The position numbers and the translations under genes are program-made. Below the pieces are notes generated by a model. It was not told where the DNA came from. It did no database searches and saw only the letters and a program-made list of their open reading frames with translations. From Vitrella brassicaformis CCMP3155 (taxonomy: Eukaryota; Protista; Chromerida), in NCBI GenBank assembly GCA_001179505.1, contig CDMY01000305.1, forward strand, positions 186,028-250,000: a DNA stretch of 63,973 nucleotides, in the 5' to 3' direction. This document shows, piece after piece, positions 52,844 through 58,800 of the stretch (the stretch's first letter is position 1; every line of letters begins with the position of its first letter).

Positions 52844-52866
52844 CGGTGAACAGATGAGCGCAGTGT

Positions 52867-53416
52867 ATGCGCTTGTGTAGCCTAGGCGCCACCCTTCGAC
52901 GCCTTGTAGACAAGCCAGCAGCCAGAGACCCGCTCCCTCCCCCGCTTCGACCGCTACCGCCACCCCACCACCGCTTCTCGTCGACAACGACCATGGCGCG
53001 GCGTGCTGAGGCAGGCACCGCCCACGCTCTCGGCGGCGAGGGCAGCAACCGGCTGGGAGGACCCTTCACGCCCACCAAGCAGCCGGAGTACGTTCCGCAT
53101 CGCATCGCCCTGTTTGAGCAGTGCTTCAAGGACCAGGAAGATGCCAGAAGGGGTACCCCACGCTGCCGTCAACACACATCTGCCTCGTCATCTCACCATT
53201 TTCATGTGTGTGTGTGTGTGTCAGCGAAAGCTGGGCGTCCCATCAATATCGAGCTGCCCGACGGGACGGTCAAGACGGGCACGGCATTCGAGACGACCCC
53301 CCACACCATCGCCGCAGAGATCTCGAAAGGACTCGCCAACGCTGTCATCGTCGCCAAGGTGAGGGAACCATCACAGTCCATTCGCACACACGGAGGGGTG
53401 CCTTACATCTCTCTCC

Positions 53417-53451
<35 letters not shown>

Positions 53452-56400
53452 TCTGTAGGTGTTCTACACCGAGACCATGTCGGGTGAGGAGGGCCTGGTG
53501 GCCGCCGACGATGACGAAGAGGACGAGGCGGAGGAGATCGGTAAGGGGGAGAGAGAGAGACGGAGGACCAACCGCATTTCTTTCCTTCTCTCATTGCCTG
53601 CCTGTCTGTGCCTGGATGTCTGTGTGTGTTCAGCGGAGTCAAAGATCTGCCAGGAGTATGCGTCGAAGTTAGAGACGGACAAGGGGGAGCTATGGGACCT
53701 GCATCGGCCCCTGGAGGGCAGCTGCCGGATGAAGCTGCTCAAGTTCGACGACCCTGAGGGCCAGCACTGCTTCTGGCACTCATCAGCGCATATCCTCGGT
53801 AGGTACACACACACGGCACCCCCACAGCCGCAGAGCACACAGATGTTGTGGTGTGTGGTGTTATGTTATTGTCTGTCGTGTGCAGGTCAGTGTCTGGAGG
53901 CAGAGTACGGATCTCATCTCACGGTCGGCCCGGCGCTCACATCCGGCTTCTACTACGACTGCTACATGGGCGACACGGTCAGTCAGCTGGCAGCCAGCCC
54001 AGGCAACACACCACCAACACGACACAGAGAGAGGATGCTTTGTCTGATATGTCTGATTTGTGTGTGTTGTGTGTGTGTGTGCAGCCACTGACCCAGGAGG
54101 CCTTCCCGGTGCTCAACAAGCATGCTGAGCGGATAGCCAAGGAGGACCAGAAGTTCCACCGCCTCGTCATCGCCAAGGAGCAGGCTCTCGAGATGTTCAA
54201 GGTGAGCAGCACACACACACAAACATGGTATGTCCATGTGTGTGTGTGTGTGTGTGACATACCATGTTTGTGTGTGTGTGTGTCGCTGTGTGTGTTTGTG
54301 TGTTGTGTGTTGTGTGTCGTTAGCACAACCCGTTCAAGGTGGCGCTGATCAGCAACAAAATCCCCGACGGCGGCAAGACCACCTGCTATAGGTACGCACA
54401 GGCTCACACACATTCTCCCTCCCACCCACACACACACACAGGGGTGCCCTTATCTGAAGTCACGTGGATTGGTGTGTGTTATGATGCCAGGTGTGGTCCA
54501 CTGATCGACCTGTGTAAGGGCCCCCATCTGCCGTCGACTGGCAAGGTCAAGGCGTTCGAGGCCTTCAAGAACTCCTCCGCCTACTGGCTGGGCAAAAGCG
54601 ACAACGGTGCGGTGGTCACACTCACACCCACATCAACACACAGATGGATGCCATGCACTCATCTCTCTCTGTGTGTGTGTGTGTGTGTGTGTCCATCTGC
54701 AGATTCGCTGCAGCGCGTGTACGCGATTTCGTTCCCCGACAAGAAACAGCTCACCGAACACAAAAGGTGAGCGTCGCTACACACACACACACATGGATGG
54801 ATGGATGGATGGCCTACATGCGCCGACCCTGTGTGTTTGTATGTGTGGGTGCAGGCTGATAGCGAAGGCCGAGGAGCTTGATCACCGCAAGGTCGGGGCC
54901 AAGCAGGACCTCTACTTCTTCGACTCAAACGTCTCACCTGGTACCCACAGAGACAGACAGACAGACAGCCAGACAGACAGAGGATGGGGCGATCGGGGGT
55001 GGTGGCCTTGGCCTTCTTGTGTGTGTGTGGGTTTGTGGGTTTGCAGGCTCGTGTTTCTGGCTGCCCATGGGCACGCGGATCTACAACAAACTCATAGACT
55101 TCATGAAGGTCCGCAGACGCACAGACACCCACACCCACCGGGCCACACACTCACATTCTCTCCTCCCTCCCTCTCTCTCTGTCTCTCTCTCCGTGTGTGT
55201 GTGTGTGTGTGCTCAGAGCGAGTACCGGCTGCGAGGTTTCCACGAGGTCATCTCCCCCAACATCTACAGCTGCGACCTGTGGAAGACCAGCGGGCACTAC
55301 CAGAACTACAAAGAGAATATGTACACGTTCGACGTCGAGAAGCAGGAGTGGGGGCTCAAACCCATGAACTGCCCCGGTCCGAACGAATGCACCCACACAG
55401 AGAGACCCATGGGTGGAGGGATGGAGAGATGTGTGTGTGTGTGTGTGCTTGGTGGCGGATGGTGCGTGCGGCAGGCCACTGCATCATGTTCCAGAAGATG
55501 GCCCCGTCATACAAACAGCTGCCAGTCAGGTAAACAAACGCTGCTGCCTCAACAACACACACCATCACACCCGTCAGTCACATCAATCACACGCCACCAC
55601 CCATTCATTGATGTGTTGTGTTGTGTGTCGTTTCTGTCTGCGTCAGGTTGGCTGATTTCGGTGTGTTGCATCGCAACGAGGTGAGCGGTTCCCTGACGGG
55701 CCTCACGCGGGTCCGCCGCTTCCAGCAGGACGACGCACATATCTTCTGCAGACCAGACCAAATCACAGTACGGACACACTCACACACACACAGACAGAGA
55801 GAGAGAGAGACGGTTGTGTGTGTGTGTGTGTGTGTTTGGTAGGACGAGGTGATGGCGGCGCTGGACTTTCTGTTCTTCGTCTACAAGAGCTTCGGCTTCG
55901 AGTTCGAGCTCAAGCTCTCCACCAGACCCAAGAAGGCGCTCGGTAGGACAACGTGCCACCAGACTGAGACTGCCACTGCATGGTCTCTCTGTGCGTGTCT
56001 GGGTGGTAGGTGCGGTGGACATGTGGGACGAGGCCGAGAAGGACCTGGCAGAGGCACTCGAGAGCACCGGGCTCCCATGGTACACAGCCACAGCTCCCCA
56101 CCCCCACACAGACCCTATATGTGTGCGGCATACGTCCATTCTCTCTCAGGGAGTTGAACCCCGCCGACGGTGCCTTTTATGGTCCCAAGATCGACATCAA
56201 GCTGTCCGACGCTCTGAAGCGCACCCACCAGTGCGGCACGATCCAGCTGGACTTCCAGCTGCCCATCCGGTTCAACCTCCAGTACAAGACCGAGGAGGTC
56301 ACCACCGGGGCAGCTGGTGGCGGTGGTGGTGGTGGCAAAGGAGGTCAGTCCGCACCCGACGCACCCACGGCGAATGGCGCCGCTGGTGATGCCGCTTCGG

Positions 56401-57995
56401 CTCAGCCGGCGGCCGGCAGCAGCAAGGGCGGCGAGGAGTTCCAGGAGGGCGTGCTCAAGCCCGGACACAAGAGACCCGTCATCATCCACCGAGCCATCCT
56501 CGGTAGGCCATTGGGACACACACACCATCCACCCACACACAACACACCCGGTGTGTTGTGTGGACCTTTTCCCCTGTCAGGCTCTGTTGAGCGCATGGCG
56601 GCCATCCTGGTTGAGCACACGGAAGGCCGGTTCCCCTTCTGGCTGAGCCCTAGACAGGCCATTGTGTGTCCGATATCGGAGAAGAGCCACCACTACGCCC
56701 TGTGGGTCAGGCAGACACTCCAAGACCACGGTGAGATGAGACGGATGGATGTGTGTAGACAGAGAGGGAGGGAGGGAGAGAGGGAGAGAGAGAGAGAGGC
56801 CGGATCCAAGGCATACGCGAGAGCGGAGTTCGCTGTTCGCTGTGTGCAATTTCACCCAGCCGAGAGAGAGATATAGTCGGTTATTATTCGGTCACTCCCC
56901 CCCTGCACATATCAGATGCACACACATGGGAGCCGGCCATGCCCTGATGCGACACAACACTTCTTCCCTTCCCTCTGTGTGTGTGTGTGTGCAGGTTACT
57001 ACGTCGAAGCGGACACTTCGAGTGCCACTGTCAACAAGAAGATCTTGAACGCGCAGCACGCCCAGTGGAACTACATTCTCGTTGTTGGTGCGCAGGCAGT
57101 GATCAATGACACACTGCACTGCAGCTCCCAGACCCCCAGGGAGGCACATAGCAACCATCCATGTGCATGTGTGTGTGGCATACAGGCGAGAAGGAGAGCC
57201 AGAGCGGCACCATCACCGTGCGGCGGAGAGAGGACGGCCCGAAGGACCAGGTGAGCTGACGCACAGCCTTCAACCAAGCCTCTCACCGTTTCCTTCCCTC
57301 TCTGTCAGGTCGAGATGGCCATGCCCCAGCTACTGGAGCTCTTCGCCTCCCTCGGCACGCCCTGCTCCAAGAACTTGAACAGCTTCAAGGCCTACCAGCC
57401 ACCAGGCTCCCACAAGCAGGAACACCAGCAAAACCAGGTGGTCAATGGCACCATCAATGGCACCACCCTGATGCACGCTGACAACCCCGGCCCCCGAGAG
57501 TCGCCCACCAACAACCCTGGCAGCAAGAAGGCCCACCAGTCACTCGGCGATAAGGTGCGCTACACAGCCAGCCGCAGGACACTTGACACTTGATGTATCC
57601 GCGCCTGTGGTGCGTTTGGTTCAGTTGCGGCGGTCTGGTTCGCTCACGGTGGAGATATCCGATGACGGCGACCTCGGTGAGTTAGCGAATGAATGGATGG
57701 CCACTGATCGACCGGCGGCTGGGTACTATTGTGTGCGTGTTGGTGCAGAAGCGGTGTTGGAGCAGCAACCGTTCATCGGGGGTTTCAGGCCGAGCAGGCG
57801 TGATGCGGATCTGTACCAGCAGGTCGTCGCATCCAACGTGCCGCCCAAGACGCCTAACATGATAAGATGGTCAGTCAGTCATCGGCTGAGCCGCGCCCGA
57901 CAGCCAGCAGAGCTGTGTGTGTGTGTGTGTGTGTGTGTGTCAGGTATGAGCAGGTGGCGCACTTCAACGAGGACCAGCGGGCCACCTGGCGATGA
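52867..57995 (+). CDS. TARS: Threonyl-tRNA synthetase (eukaryotic type) with an N-terminal extension and a spliced C-terminal EF1B/GST-like domain
   Basis: TGS domain (IELPDG), [91 protein letters not shown] and PFWLSPRQ. Terminal exons are 57625-57676, 57749-57869 and 57944-57995. Confidence 0.96.
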
Positions 57996-58408
57996 TCTGT
58001 CCATCCACTCGTAAACGAGTGGCTGGCTGTGTGCCGGTCTGTCTGTCTGCCTGTCCGTGTGTGTCTCTGTATGTGTGTGTGTGTGTTGCGTTCCTTCCTT
58101 TCATGGTGATGACGTGTGTATTGTGCCGCGTGTCGATGTTTTGGATTTTTTGTGAGTGTGTCTGTCTGTCTATGGTATGTATGGTGCATTGCATGCCATG
58201 CCCCTCACTCACCTTGTCTGTCGTGCTGTGTGGATGCCTGACAATTCAATCAACAAAGGGATGGATGGAGGGATGGATGTGCACGTGTGGCGAGTGAGTC
58301 TTCATGCATCGCCTTCAATTTTGATATGTATGTGGCCATGGGGTGGCTGGCTATGGGTGGGTGCTTCATGCATGTGCGGTGTGGTGCCTGTCGTGAGCTG
58401 AGCAGTGT

Positions 58409-58800
58409 CTGTCAGTGAGGCTCGGCGCCGCATGACGTCGAGGGGCGTCGGCGTCATGCNNNNNNNNNNNNNNNNNNNNNNNNNNNNNNNNNNNNNNNNN
58501 NNNNNNNNNNNNNNNNNNNNNNNNNNNNNNNNNNNNNNNNNNNNNNNNNNNNNNNNNNNNNNNNNNNNNNNNNNNNNNNNNNNNNNNNNNNNNNNNNNNN
58601 NNNNNNNNNNNNNNNNNNNNNNNNNNNNNNNNNNNNNNNNNNNNNNNNNNNNNNNNNNNNNNNNNNNNNNNNNNNNNNNNNNNNNNNNNNNNNNNNNNNN
58701 NNNNNNNNNNNNNNNNNNNNNNNNNNNNNNNNNNNNNNNNNNNNNNNNNNNNNNNNNNNGAGGGGCGTCGGCGTCATGCGGCGCCGAGCCTCACTGACAG
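58409..58800. repeat. Perfect 29-bp inverted repeat spanning an assembly gap
   Basis: 58409-58437 ctgtcagtgaggctcggcgccgcatgacg is the exact reverse complement of 58772-58800. Confidence 0.95.

Follow-up and report, generated by a model that had tools for sequence, protein, structure and literature searches.

Spliced exons add a module homologous to the eEF1B-alpha N-domain to the C-terminus of threonyl-tRNA synthetase in Vitrella brassicaformis

Does the gene for threonyl-tRNA synthetase (ThrRS) of the chromerid Vitrella brassicaformis CCMP3155 end at the stop codon of its last open reading frame (ORF), or do further exons append a docking-type domain to the enzyme, and if so, which partner would this domain serve? 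The question is raised by a stretch of 63,973 nucleotides (contig CDMY01000305.1, positions 186,028 to 250,000 of the forward strand; hereafter the window, to which all coordinates refer unless a contig is named). For this stretch, an initial reading of the sequence (the original prediction) had proposed that three in-phase exons beyond the ORF stop extend ThrRS by a tail resembling the N-terminal module of eEF1B, which in turn resembles the C-terminal domain of glutathione S-transferases (GST). Here we show that splicing joins these exons to the rest of the ThrRS mRNA, that the encoded module is homologous to the eEF1B N-domain and like it in fold, and that it is conserved in many ThrRS.

Transcripts and exon structure of the ThrRS gene

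To follow splicing of the tail, we searched public sequencing runs for sequence of the gene, which was found in eight runs from four studies. In five of them no more than about 0.5-0.6 of the sampled words were present, matching the expectation for spliced copies; four of these five (three studies) were aligned over 52850-58440. In the four aligned runs, intron-less cDNA contigs revealed 13 GT..AG joints between 53539 and 57748. Although the record of these runs says no more than 'RNA?', their contigs lack 13 canonical introns and must therefore reflect spliced mRNA. Two of the joints correspond to junctions of the tail as originally predicted, namely 57552 to 57623 (cut +2), equivalent to 57554/57625, and 57675 to 57748 (cut +1), equivalent to 57676/57749. 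Both were recovered in all four runs, on contigs that also include exons of the ThrRS core (55223-55375, 56149-56501 and 56580-56732). Junction 57869/57944, the third one, is unlisted, as it falls in a masked (TG)n stretch. However, contig X1-3 places position 57871 at 1942 and position 58101 at 2098 of its record, which leaves 157 nt between 57869 and 58101. This is exactly the length of 57944..58100 and thus fits the predicted joint. In addition, the codon for W911, which is assembled across this last intron, encodes a residue that is invariant in 53 homologous modules.

These data agree with a protein that is already public. P0200, for which NCBI gives the name 'unnamed protein product [Vitrella brassicaformis CCMP3155]' and UniRef the name 'threonine--tRNA ligase', maps with 927 of 927 residues exactly onto 24 coding exons at 52993..57995 on the plus strand, and its C-terminal end is identical to the peptide proposed for the three exons, whose pieces translate exactly as written. 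The introns of the gene are short, GT..AG-bounded and (TG)n-rich. From N- to C-terminus, P0200 comprises a TGS domain, a SAD/editing domain, the class II core (tRNA-synt_2b), the HGTP anticodon-binding domain and the C-terminal module. The Pfam matches PF02824 (5.9e-5), PF07973 (5e-10), PF00587 (4.9e-39) and PF03129 (2.8e-17) all pass the curated cut-offs, and P0200 falls among the eukaryotic enzymes in a ThrRS tree; it is a class II ThrRS of the eukaryotic cytosolic type. In precomputed as well as fresh Pfam annotation of P0200 only the first four domains are covered, so that the spliced gene model is public while its C-terminal module carries no annotation there. Following initial searches with single exons, we used P0200, which equals the spliced product, for queries with the Vitrella protein.

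The transition from the canonical enzyme to the tail begins in exon 21 (57309..57554; joint 57247 to 57306, cut +3, at its start), which encodes the end of the anticodon-binding domain, a short conserved motif and a low-complexity Q/N/P-rich linker running to ..SLGDK. Intron 21 (57555..57624; 70 nt, GT..AG) is removed in all four runs. Exon 22 (57625..57676) contributes 17 residues and opens a Glu codon with its last base; it completes the linker and starts the first helix of the module, as judged from translation, joints and the predicted helix 14-23 in an AlphaFold model of P0200:854-927. After intron 22 (57677..57748; 72 nt, GT..AG), exon 23 (57749..57869) supplies 39 residues between the split Glu (g/aa) and Trp (tg/g) codons and thereby, according to translation and the alignment of homologous modules, the core of the module with G882, D889 and R910. 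Intron 23 (57870..57943; 74 nt, GT..AG) holds the (TG)n run mentioned above, and the coding part of exon 24 (57944..57995) completes the Trp codon and adds 16 residues, comprising the last two helices, and the TGA stop. The module as a whole is thus spread over exons 22 to 24 (57664..57992, residues about 867-927 of P0200), as delimited by the AlphaFold model, profile matches and fold superposition. The 3' untranslated region (UTR) extends to at least 58398, since the cDNA contigs cover 58101-58398 and continue.

Retention of intron 21 would bring an in-frame TGA at 57591-57593 into the message, corresponding to the ORF stop at 57593, and yield a ThrRS without the module. No contig from the four runs ends at this position; a rare intron-retaining isoform is still compatible with the contigs. 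The idea that the three exons form a separate downstream gene, or reflect an artefact of annotation or assembly, could draw on this stop codon and on the bare 'RNA?' label of the runs, but it is effectively refuted and retains next to no probability, because in four runs single contigs with canonical joints run from core exons through all three exons of the tail into the 3' UTR, because metagenome contigs encode core and tail of the relatives P0197 and P0011 in a single gene call without introns, and because such a tail ends at least 54 ThrRS. Hence the three tail exons belong to the ThrRS transcript.

Several further features of the gene were noted. Right after the anticodon-binding domain (57327-57400), the conserved motif S.K/N..N.F..(F/Y).. 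is present in all members of the alveolate-type clade, regardless of whether they carry the module (including the tails of P0007, P0194 and P0256); in relatives of P0200 it is followed by an Ala/Lys-rich linker. Within the class II core, a Gly/Ala-rich low-complexity insert separates motifs 2 and 3 (56290-56460, residues about 598-655), and relatives have Lys/Glu-rich inserts at this site. Trypanosomatid ThrRS likewise carry inserts between these motifs (PMC8319005). In the 3' UTR, a run of N (58461-58760) within 58399-58789 is flanked by an inverted duplication, across which the cDNA contigs jump from 58398 to about 58790; the duplication is probably a palindromic assembly artefact rather than real sequence. 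Elsewhere in the Vitrella assembly (72.7 Mb, 1064 contigs), a second ThrRS-like gene is found on contig C402 (C402:24713-25634), which is 43-59% identical to P0200 over core exons. This agrees with a study of chromerid aminoacyl-tRNA synthetases (aaRS) reporting two ThrRS genes for Vitrella, one of eukaryotic type and one organellar, and the gene on C402 presumably encodes the latter (vbra_14881 in PMC6723311).

Relationship of the tail to the N-domain of eEF1B-alpha

To determine what the tail is, we aligned 53 ThrRS C-terminal modules (alignment A1). Besides W911, residue D889 is invariant in A1, while L874, G882 and R910 are nearly invariant, and all five residues are kept in Vitrella. The best match of the A1 profile in the PDB is chain D of 5DQS (human 'Elongation factor 1-beta', residues 1-90), with an E-value of 6.5e-12 and 48 bits. 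It is followed by C-domains of delta-class GSTs (3e-9), by AIMP3 (4e-7) and then by EPRS and AIMP2 (E up to 0.01), these proteins of multi-synthetase complexes (MSC) scoring 33 bits or less. When used alone, the Vitrella tail also has 5DQS_D as top PDB match, albeit a marginal one (E 0.035); the tail of the relative P0007 reaches E 2.3e-4. Vitrella encodes a genuine eEF1B on contig C249, whose N-terminal exon LEKCSYITGFIPTQNDV...RWYRHIAHY matches 5DQS_D at 5e-6, and comparison of A1 with this exon by hhalign yielded a probability of 97.7% and an E-value of 1.9e-12. Exon 23 alone (39 amino acids) retrieved nothing from Pfam or the PDB and nothing in BLASTP against the Vitrella eEF1B exon, because it is too short and its RWY motif is split by intron 23. 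In the ESM Atlas, features of exon 23 pointed to GST_C/Arc1p-like clusters at 0.79-0.89, which we regard as a lead only.

Prediction of the fold points in the same direction. With A1 as input, AlphaFold modeled residues 854-927 of P0200 with a mean predicted local distance difference test score (pLDDT) of 85.7, exceeding 90 from residue 14 of this 74-residue piece onwards, and placed four helices at 14-23, 34-46, 53-63 and 67-71. Foldseek again returned 5DQS_D as top match (probability 0.98, E 0.12), the weak E-value being expected because the domain is so small, and nearly all of the next best matches were GST C-domains. Superposition by VIA-align likewise ranked 5DQS_D first, with a Z-score of 7.2 and a root mean square deviation (rmsd) of 1.9 Å over 61 residues. 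The model thus predicts a four-helix half-fold of the GST C-domain type with about 60-70 residues, in line with the fold expected from the original prediction.

Taken together, the tail and the N-terminal domain of eEF1B-alpha are almost certainly homologous, the tail being a half-domain of the GST-C type. At the level of sequence, the family profile places it in the eEF1B-alpha N-domain type in preference to other GST-C families, with the Vitrella tail alone being marginal in this respect. In CDD this type bears the name GST_C_eEF1b_like. The N-domain of human EEF1B2 (residues 1-90, the chain D mentioned above) and the ThrRS module have the same size and four-helix half-fold, and both conform to the motif L..L....Y(I/L).G..PS..D......L......P...RW(Y/F).HI..(F/Y). 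They differ in context: eEF1B-alpha is a guanine-nucleotide exchange factor (GEF) that has the domain at its N-terminus, whereas in ThrRS it is found at the C-terminus behind a long linker, with neither an acidic region nor a GEF domain after it. Indeed, P0200 lacks PF00736 (EF1_GNE) and ends 4 residues past the module, ruling out that the tail represents an eEF1B-alpha/beta subunit. As no GEF domain follows, the tail is a borrowed domain; the true eEF1B genes of Vitrella lie elsewhere, on contigs C249 and C325. The gene on C325 (locus L003, C325:20780-23887) is the second EF1_GNE gene of this organism. In contrast to the copy on C249, its exons upstream of the acidic region show no recognizable N-terminal module of the GST-C-like kind, and it may encode a subunit of the delta/beta type.

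The relationship to the GST-like domains of other synthetases had to be qualified. The original prediction likened the tail to the GST-like domains of MetRS, GluRS and ValRS, which holds for its GST-C-like helical character. However, only the C-terminal half of the GST fold is present and the thioredoxin-like half is missing. A full GST-like domain with both halves (~200 residues) is ruled out, as only ~60 ordered residues follow the low-complexity linker, and GST structures align with the tail model only over their C-terminal helices. The GST-like domains of MetRS, GluRS/EPRS, CysRS, AIMP2, AIMP3 and Arc1p therefore belong to the same superfamily and share the logic of an appended docking domain, which is reflected in weak profile matches and some matches to Arc1p_N_like, but they differ from the tail in being complete or near-complete GST folds.

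Occurrence of the module among ThrRS of protists and arthropods

To see how widespread the module is, relatives were collected in two ways. An exhaustive search with the ThrRS core gave the first tail-bearing proteins, Vitrella's own not being among them. A word search with the C-terminal part of one tail-bearing relative then returned many more ThrRS including that of Vitrella, and a word search with the P0007 tail alone found only 3 proteins. When 267 fetched ThrRS were scanned locally with a hidden Markov model (HMM), the module was detected at the C-terminus in 54, at the N-terminus in 31 and internally in one. One divergent tail (P0246) was missed by the HMM and found by eye.

For phylogenetic analysis, 103 ThrRS were used after removal of the module columns (quick method, LG+G4, unrooted), most members of the clade described next being derived from marine transcriptomes and metagenomes. 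All ThrRS with a C-terminal module fall into one clade (SH-aLRT 96), which comprises 61 rows, 41 of them with module. Vitrella and Amoebophrya carry the tail, whereas Plasmodium and Perkinsus, which belong to the same clade, do not, as confirmed by inspection of their tails by eye. The tail is therefore dispensable in some relatives. The tree needs at least five to seven state changes, indicating either repeated gains or an old gain followed by several losses. For P0197 and P0011, a single intron-less gene on metagenome contigs encodes the complete enzyme with its tail, and the fusion is hence independent of splicing there. A Vitrella-specific novelty is ruled out by the dozens of tail-bearing protist ThrRS and by the tree.

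Among the 31 ThrRS with an N-terminal module are those of insects (Homalodisca, Nilaparvata, Nesidiocoris, Gryllus) and crustaceans (Procambarus, Panulirus, Armadillidium, Tigriopus, Eurytemora). Their modules were aligned separately (alignment A2), the N-terminal segments including P0207:1-65, P0203:2-69, P0244:2-69, P0254:2-63, P0237:10-76 and P0265:11-69. Comparison of A1 with A2 by hhalign gave a probability of 99.6% (E 1.8e-23), and A2 matches 5DQS_D at E 2.7e-22. Hence, this is the same module family on the same enzyme, but it occupies the other terminus and occurs in a separate ThrRS clade, as the 24 N-terminal-module ThrRS kept in the tree form one clade of their own with a support of 100. 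Opposite location and separate clade identify the arthropod module as an independent fusion, i.e. one and the same domain was fused to ThrRS at least twice, which argues for selection on a link between ThrRS and eEF1.

Two observations on individual proteins are added. In P0162 (1288 amino acids) the module is internal (827-881) and followed by ~400 residues without a Pfam family and with a weak WHEP-like signal only; a more extended fusion or a chimeric transcript may account for this protein. The metagenome ThrRS P0042 (885 amino acids) and P0100 (836 amino acids) contain large intein-like insertions in conserved motifs of the catalytic core, after ..KPMNC and after ..RRHQC.

Candidate docking partners and implications

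Which partner could the module serve? The N-domain of eEF1B-alpha binds eEF1B-gamma's GST-like domain, as seen in the 5DQS structure and by hydrogen-deuterium exchange mass spectrometry (PMC9458455). This being the one established role of the domain, the ThrRS tail most likely addresses the same site on gamma. A gene for eEF1B-gamma is present in Vitrella (locus L004), and its exons are matched exactly by residues 63-362 of P0268, a protein from the transcriptome. We therefore modeled residues 1-205 of P0268 together with the module in three runs and with three controls. The complex scored 0.64 (runs 0.63-0.64) versus 0.00 for the best control; among 78 solved complexes 51 come up to the mark applied to this score, as do 2 of 108 mismatched pairs. 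At least 96% of the contacts are common to the runs, with partner pLDDT values of at least 84. The predicted interface involves E875-P878, F883-R884, P906, I909-R910, E913-Q914 and H917 of the module and residues 143-146, 151-152 and 181-193 of gamma. It takes in the most conserved residues on both sides, i.e. R910 with its flanking helix in the module, and T146, R185, N192 and Q193, which are invariant or nearly so, in gamma. As in eEF1B-alpha, the contact would run through the conserved RW helix. Since a like complex (5DQS) has already been solved, the score shows likeness rather than binding by this particular copy. The proposal that ThrRS may dock on EF1 is thus backed in silico only, with eEF1B-gamma as the probable partner.

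Docking of this kind would work as follows. The module of ~60 residues and four helices sits on a flexible low-complexity linker of similar length behind the anticodon-binding domain. The two tails of a dimeric ThrRS could occupy eEF1B-alpha-type sites on the GST-like N-domains of eEF1B-gamma, and ThrRS bound in this manner would be tethered to the eEF1B/eEF1A machinery, as is metazoan ValRS to eEF1H. By analogy with the ValRS-eEF1B complex, which channels Val-tRNA to eEF1A (PMC9458455), Thr-tRNA might then be handed directly to eEF1A.

Several points weigh against docking on gamma. The complex score may reflect memory of the solved 5DQS structure, and the module would have to compete with eEF1B-alpha for the same site on gamma. 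The Vitrella tail alone passes no Pfam threshold and does not match PF21972 (Arc1p_N_like, curated cut-off 27 bits), whereas 11 of the 53 homologous tails match this family at E 0.01 or better (best 1.1e-7); two modules, the P0227 tail (33.4 bits) and one arthropod N-terminal module (28.8 bits), even exceed the cut-off. The A1 profile also recognizes the GST domains of the MSC scaffold proteins AIMP3, EPRS and AIMP2. Finally, the ThrRS of Plasmodium and Perkinsus manage without the tail.

The matches to Arc1p_N_like and to AIMP3, EPRS and AIMP2 (E 4e-7 to 0.01) imply that other GST-fold partners are possible, and the module could dock ThrRS on such a protein, e.g. the scaffold of a lineage-specific MSC (p43/Arc1p-like, or GST-like domains of MetRS or GluRS). 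Apicomplexan MSCs are indeed built through GST-like domains (PMC10813123, PMC9136112), and pairing of GST-C domains within the family is promiscuous. However, the eEF1B-alpha N-domain is clearly the best match by profile (48 bits vs 33 or less) and superposes closely on the tail model, and the predicted complex with eEF1B-gamma, which is the partner that was modeled, passes its controls. We therefore consider an MSC scaffold a possible but unlikely partner. Even less probable is a role other than docking to the translation machinery, such as folding or solubility, tRNA binding, localization or moonlighting, or that the Vitrella tail is a decaying remnant. The loss of the tail in some related ThrRS would be compatible with this, as would the divergence of the Vitrella copy, which shares 20-42% identity with other tails and is among the more divergent ones, and the 'nuclear' location predicted for the eukaryotic-type Vitrella ThrRS (PMC6723311). 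On the other hand, L874, G882, D889, R910 and W911 are all preserved, the fold is predicted with high confidence, and the module was retained over a deep clade and gained separately in arthropods, which is unlike a decaying remnant.

Docking on eEF1B-gamma, as favored here, invites comparison with known systems. In metazoa, a GST-family appendage connects ValRS with the elongation factor 1 complex, and channeling to eEF1A has been proposed (PMC9458455). However, ValRS uses a full N-terminal GST-like domain that binds eEF1B-delta (beta), whereas the ThrRS tail is a half-domain of the eEF1B-alpha type with gamma as predicted partner. Termini of ThrRS family members contact the translation machinery in mammals as well, i.e. 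the MSC in case of TARSL2 (PMC6794377) and 4EHP in case of the UNE-T extension of TARS1 (PMC6430810), but these extensions are N-terminal, not GST-like, unrelated in sequence and fold, and directed to other partners. AARS Online (2024) lists a GST domain only for CysRS, GluRS-E, MetRS and ValRS, and not for ThrRS (PMC11580382), and a survey of trypanosomatids gives the same set for eukaryotic aaRS in general. In the open-access literature we found no description of an eEF1B-like or GST-like module on ThrRS, be it from protists or arthropods, and the study of chromerid aaRS (PMC6723311) makes no mention of a GST-like domain on the Vitrella enzyme. The initial claim that no ThrRS with a C-terminal GST-like module is known thus stands as far as this literature is concerned, but not for the databases, where dozens of protist ThrRS carry it.

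The module is a real, conserved docking-type module on an unexpected synthetase and is unannotated in Pfam records, although automatic annotation may exist elsewhere, e.g. in InterPro or CDD. Major concepts are not changed by it, as a synthetase with an appended docking domain is a known theme and the gene model was already public. As a practical outcome, the domain is flagged in dozens of database proteins, for which A1 and A2 could seed an annotation model. GST-family appendages wire eukaryotic synthetases into MSCs and into the elongation-factor complex, and ThrRS has been outside the accepted list; the tail-bearing enzymes suggest that ThrRS is physically connected with this complex in a way not described so far. 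Tentatively, ThrRS may be a recurrent and unrecognized partner of the eEF1B complex. In this scenario, the gamma-binding domain of eEF1B-alpha would have been copied onto ThrRS twice independently, C-terminally in a deep clade of protists (chromerids, Syndiniales, probable dinoflagellates and others) and N-terminally in arthropods, placing ThrRS in an alpha slot on gamma and passing Thr-tRNA directly to eEF1A. If true, ThrRS and eEF1H would form a counterpart of the ValRS-eEF1H complex of metazoa. A ThrRS equipped with the gamma-binding domain of eEF1B-alpha, which was kept throughout this deep clade and arose anew at the other end of the enzyme in arthropods, hints that ValRS-eEF1H is joined by a second assembly of a synthetase with eEF1, and provides a simple, testable handle on tRNA channeling in alveolates.

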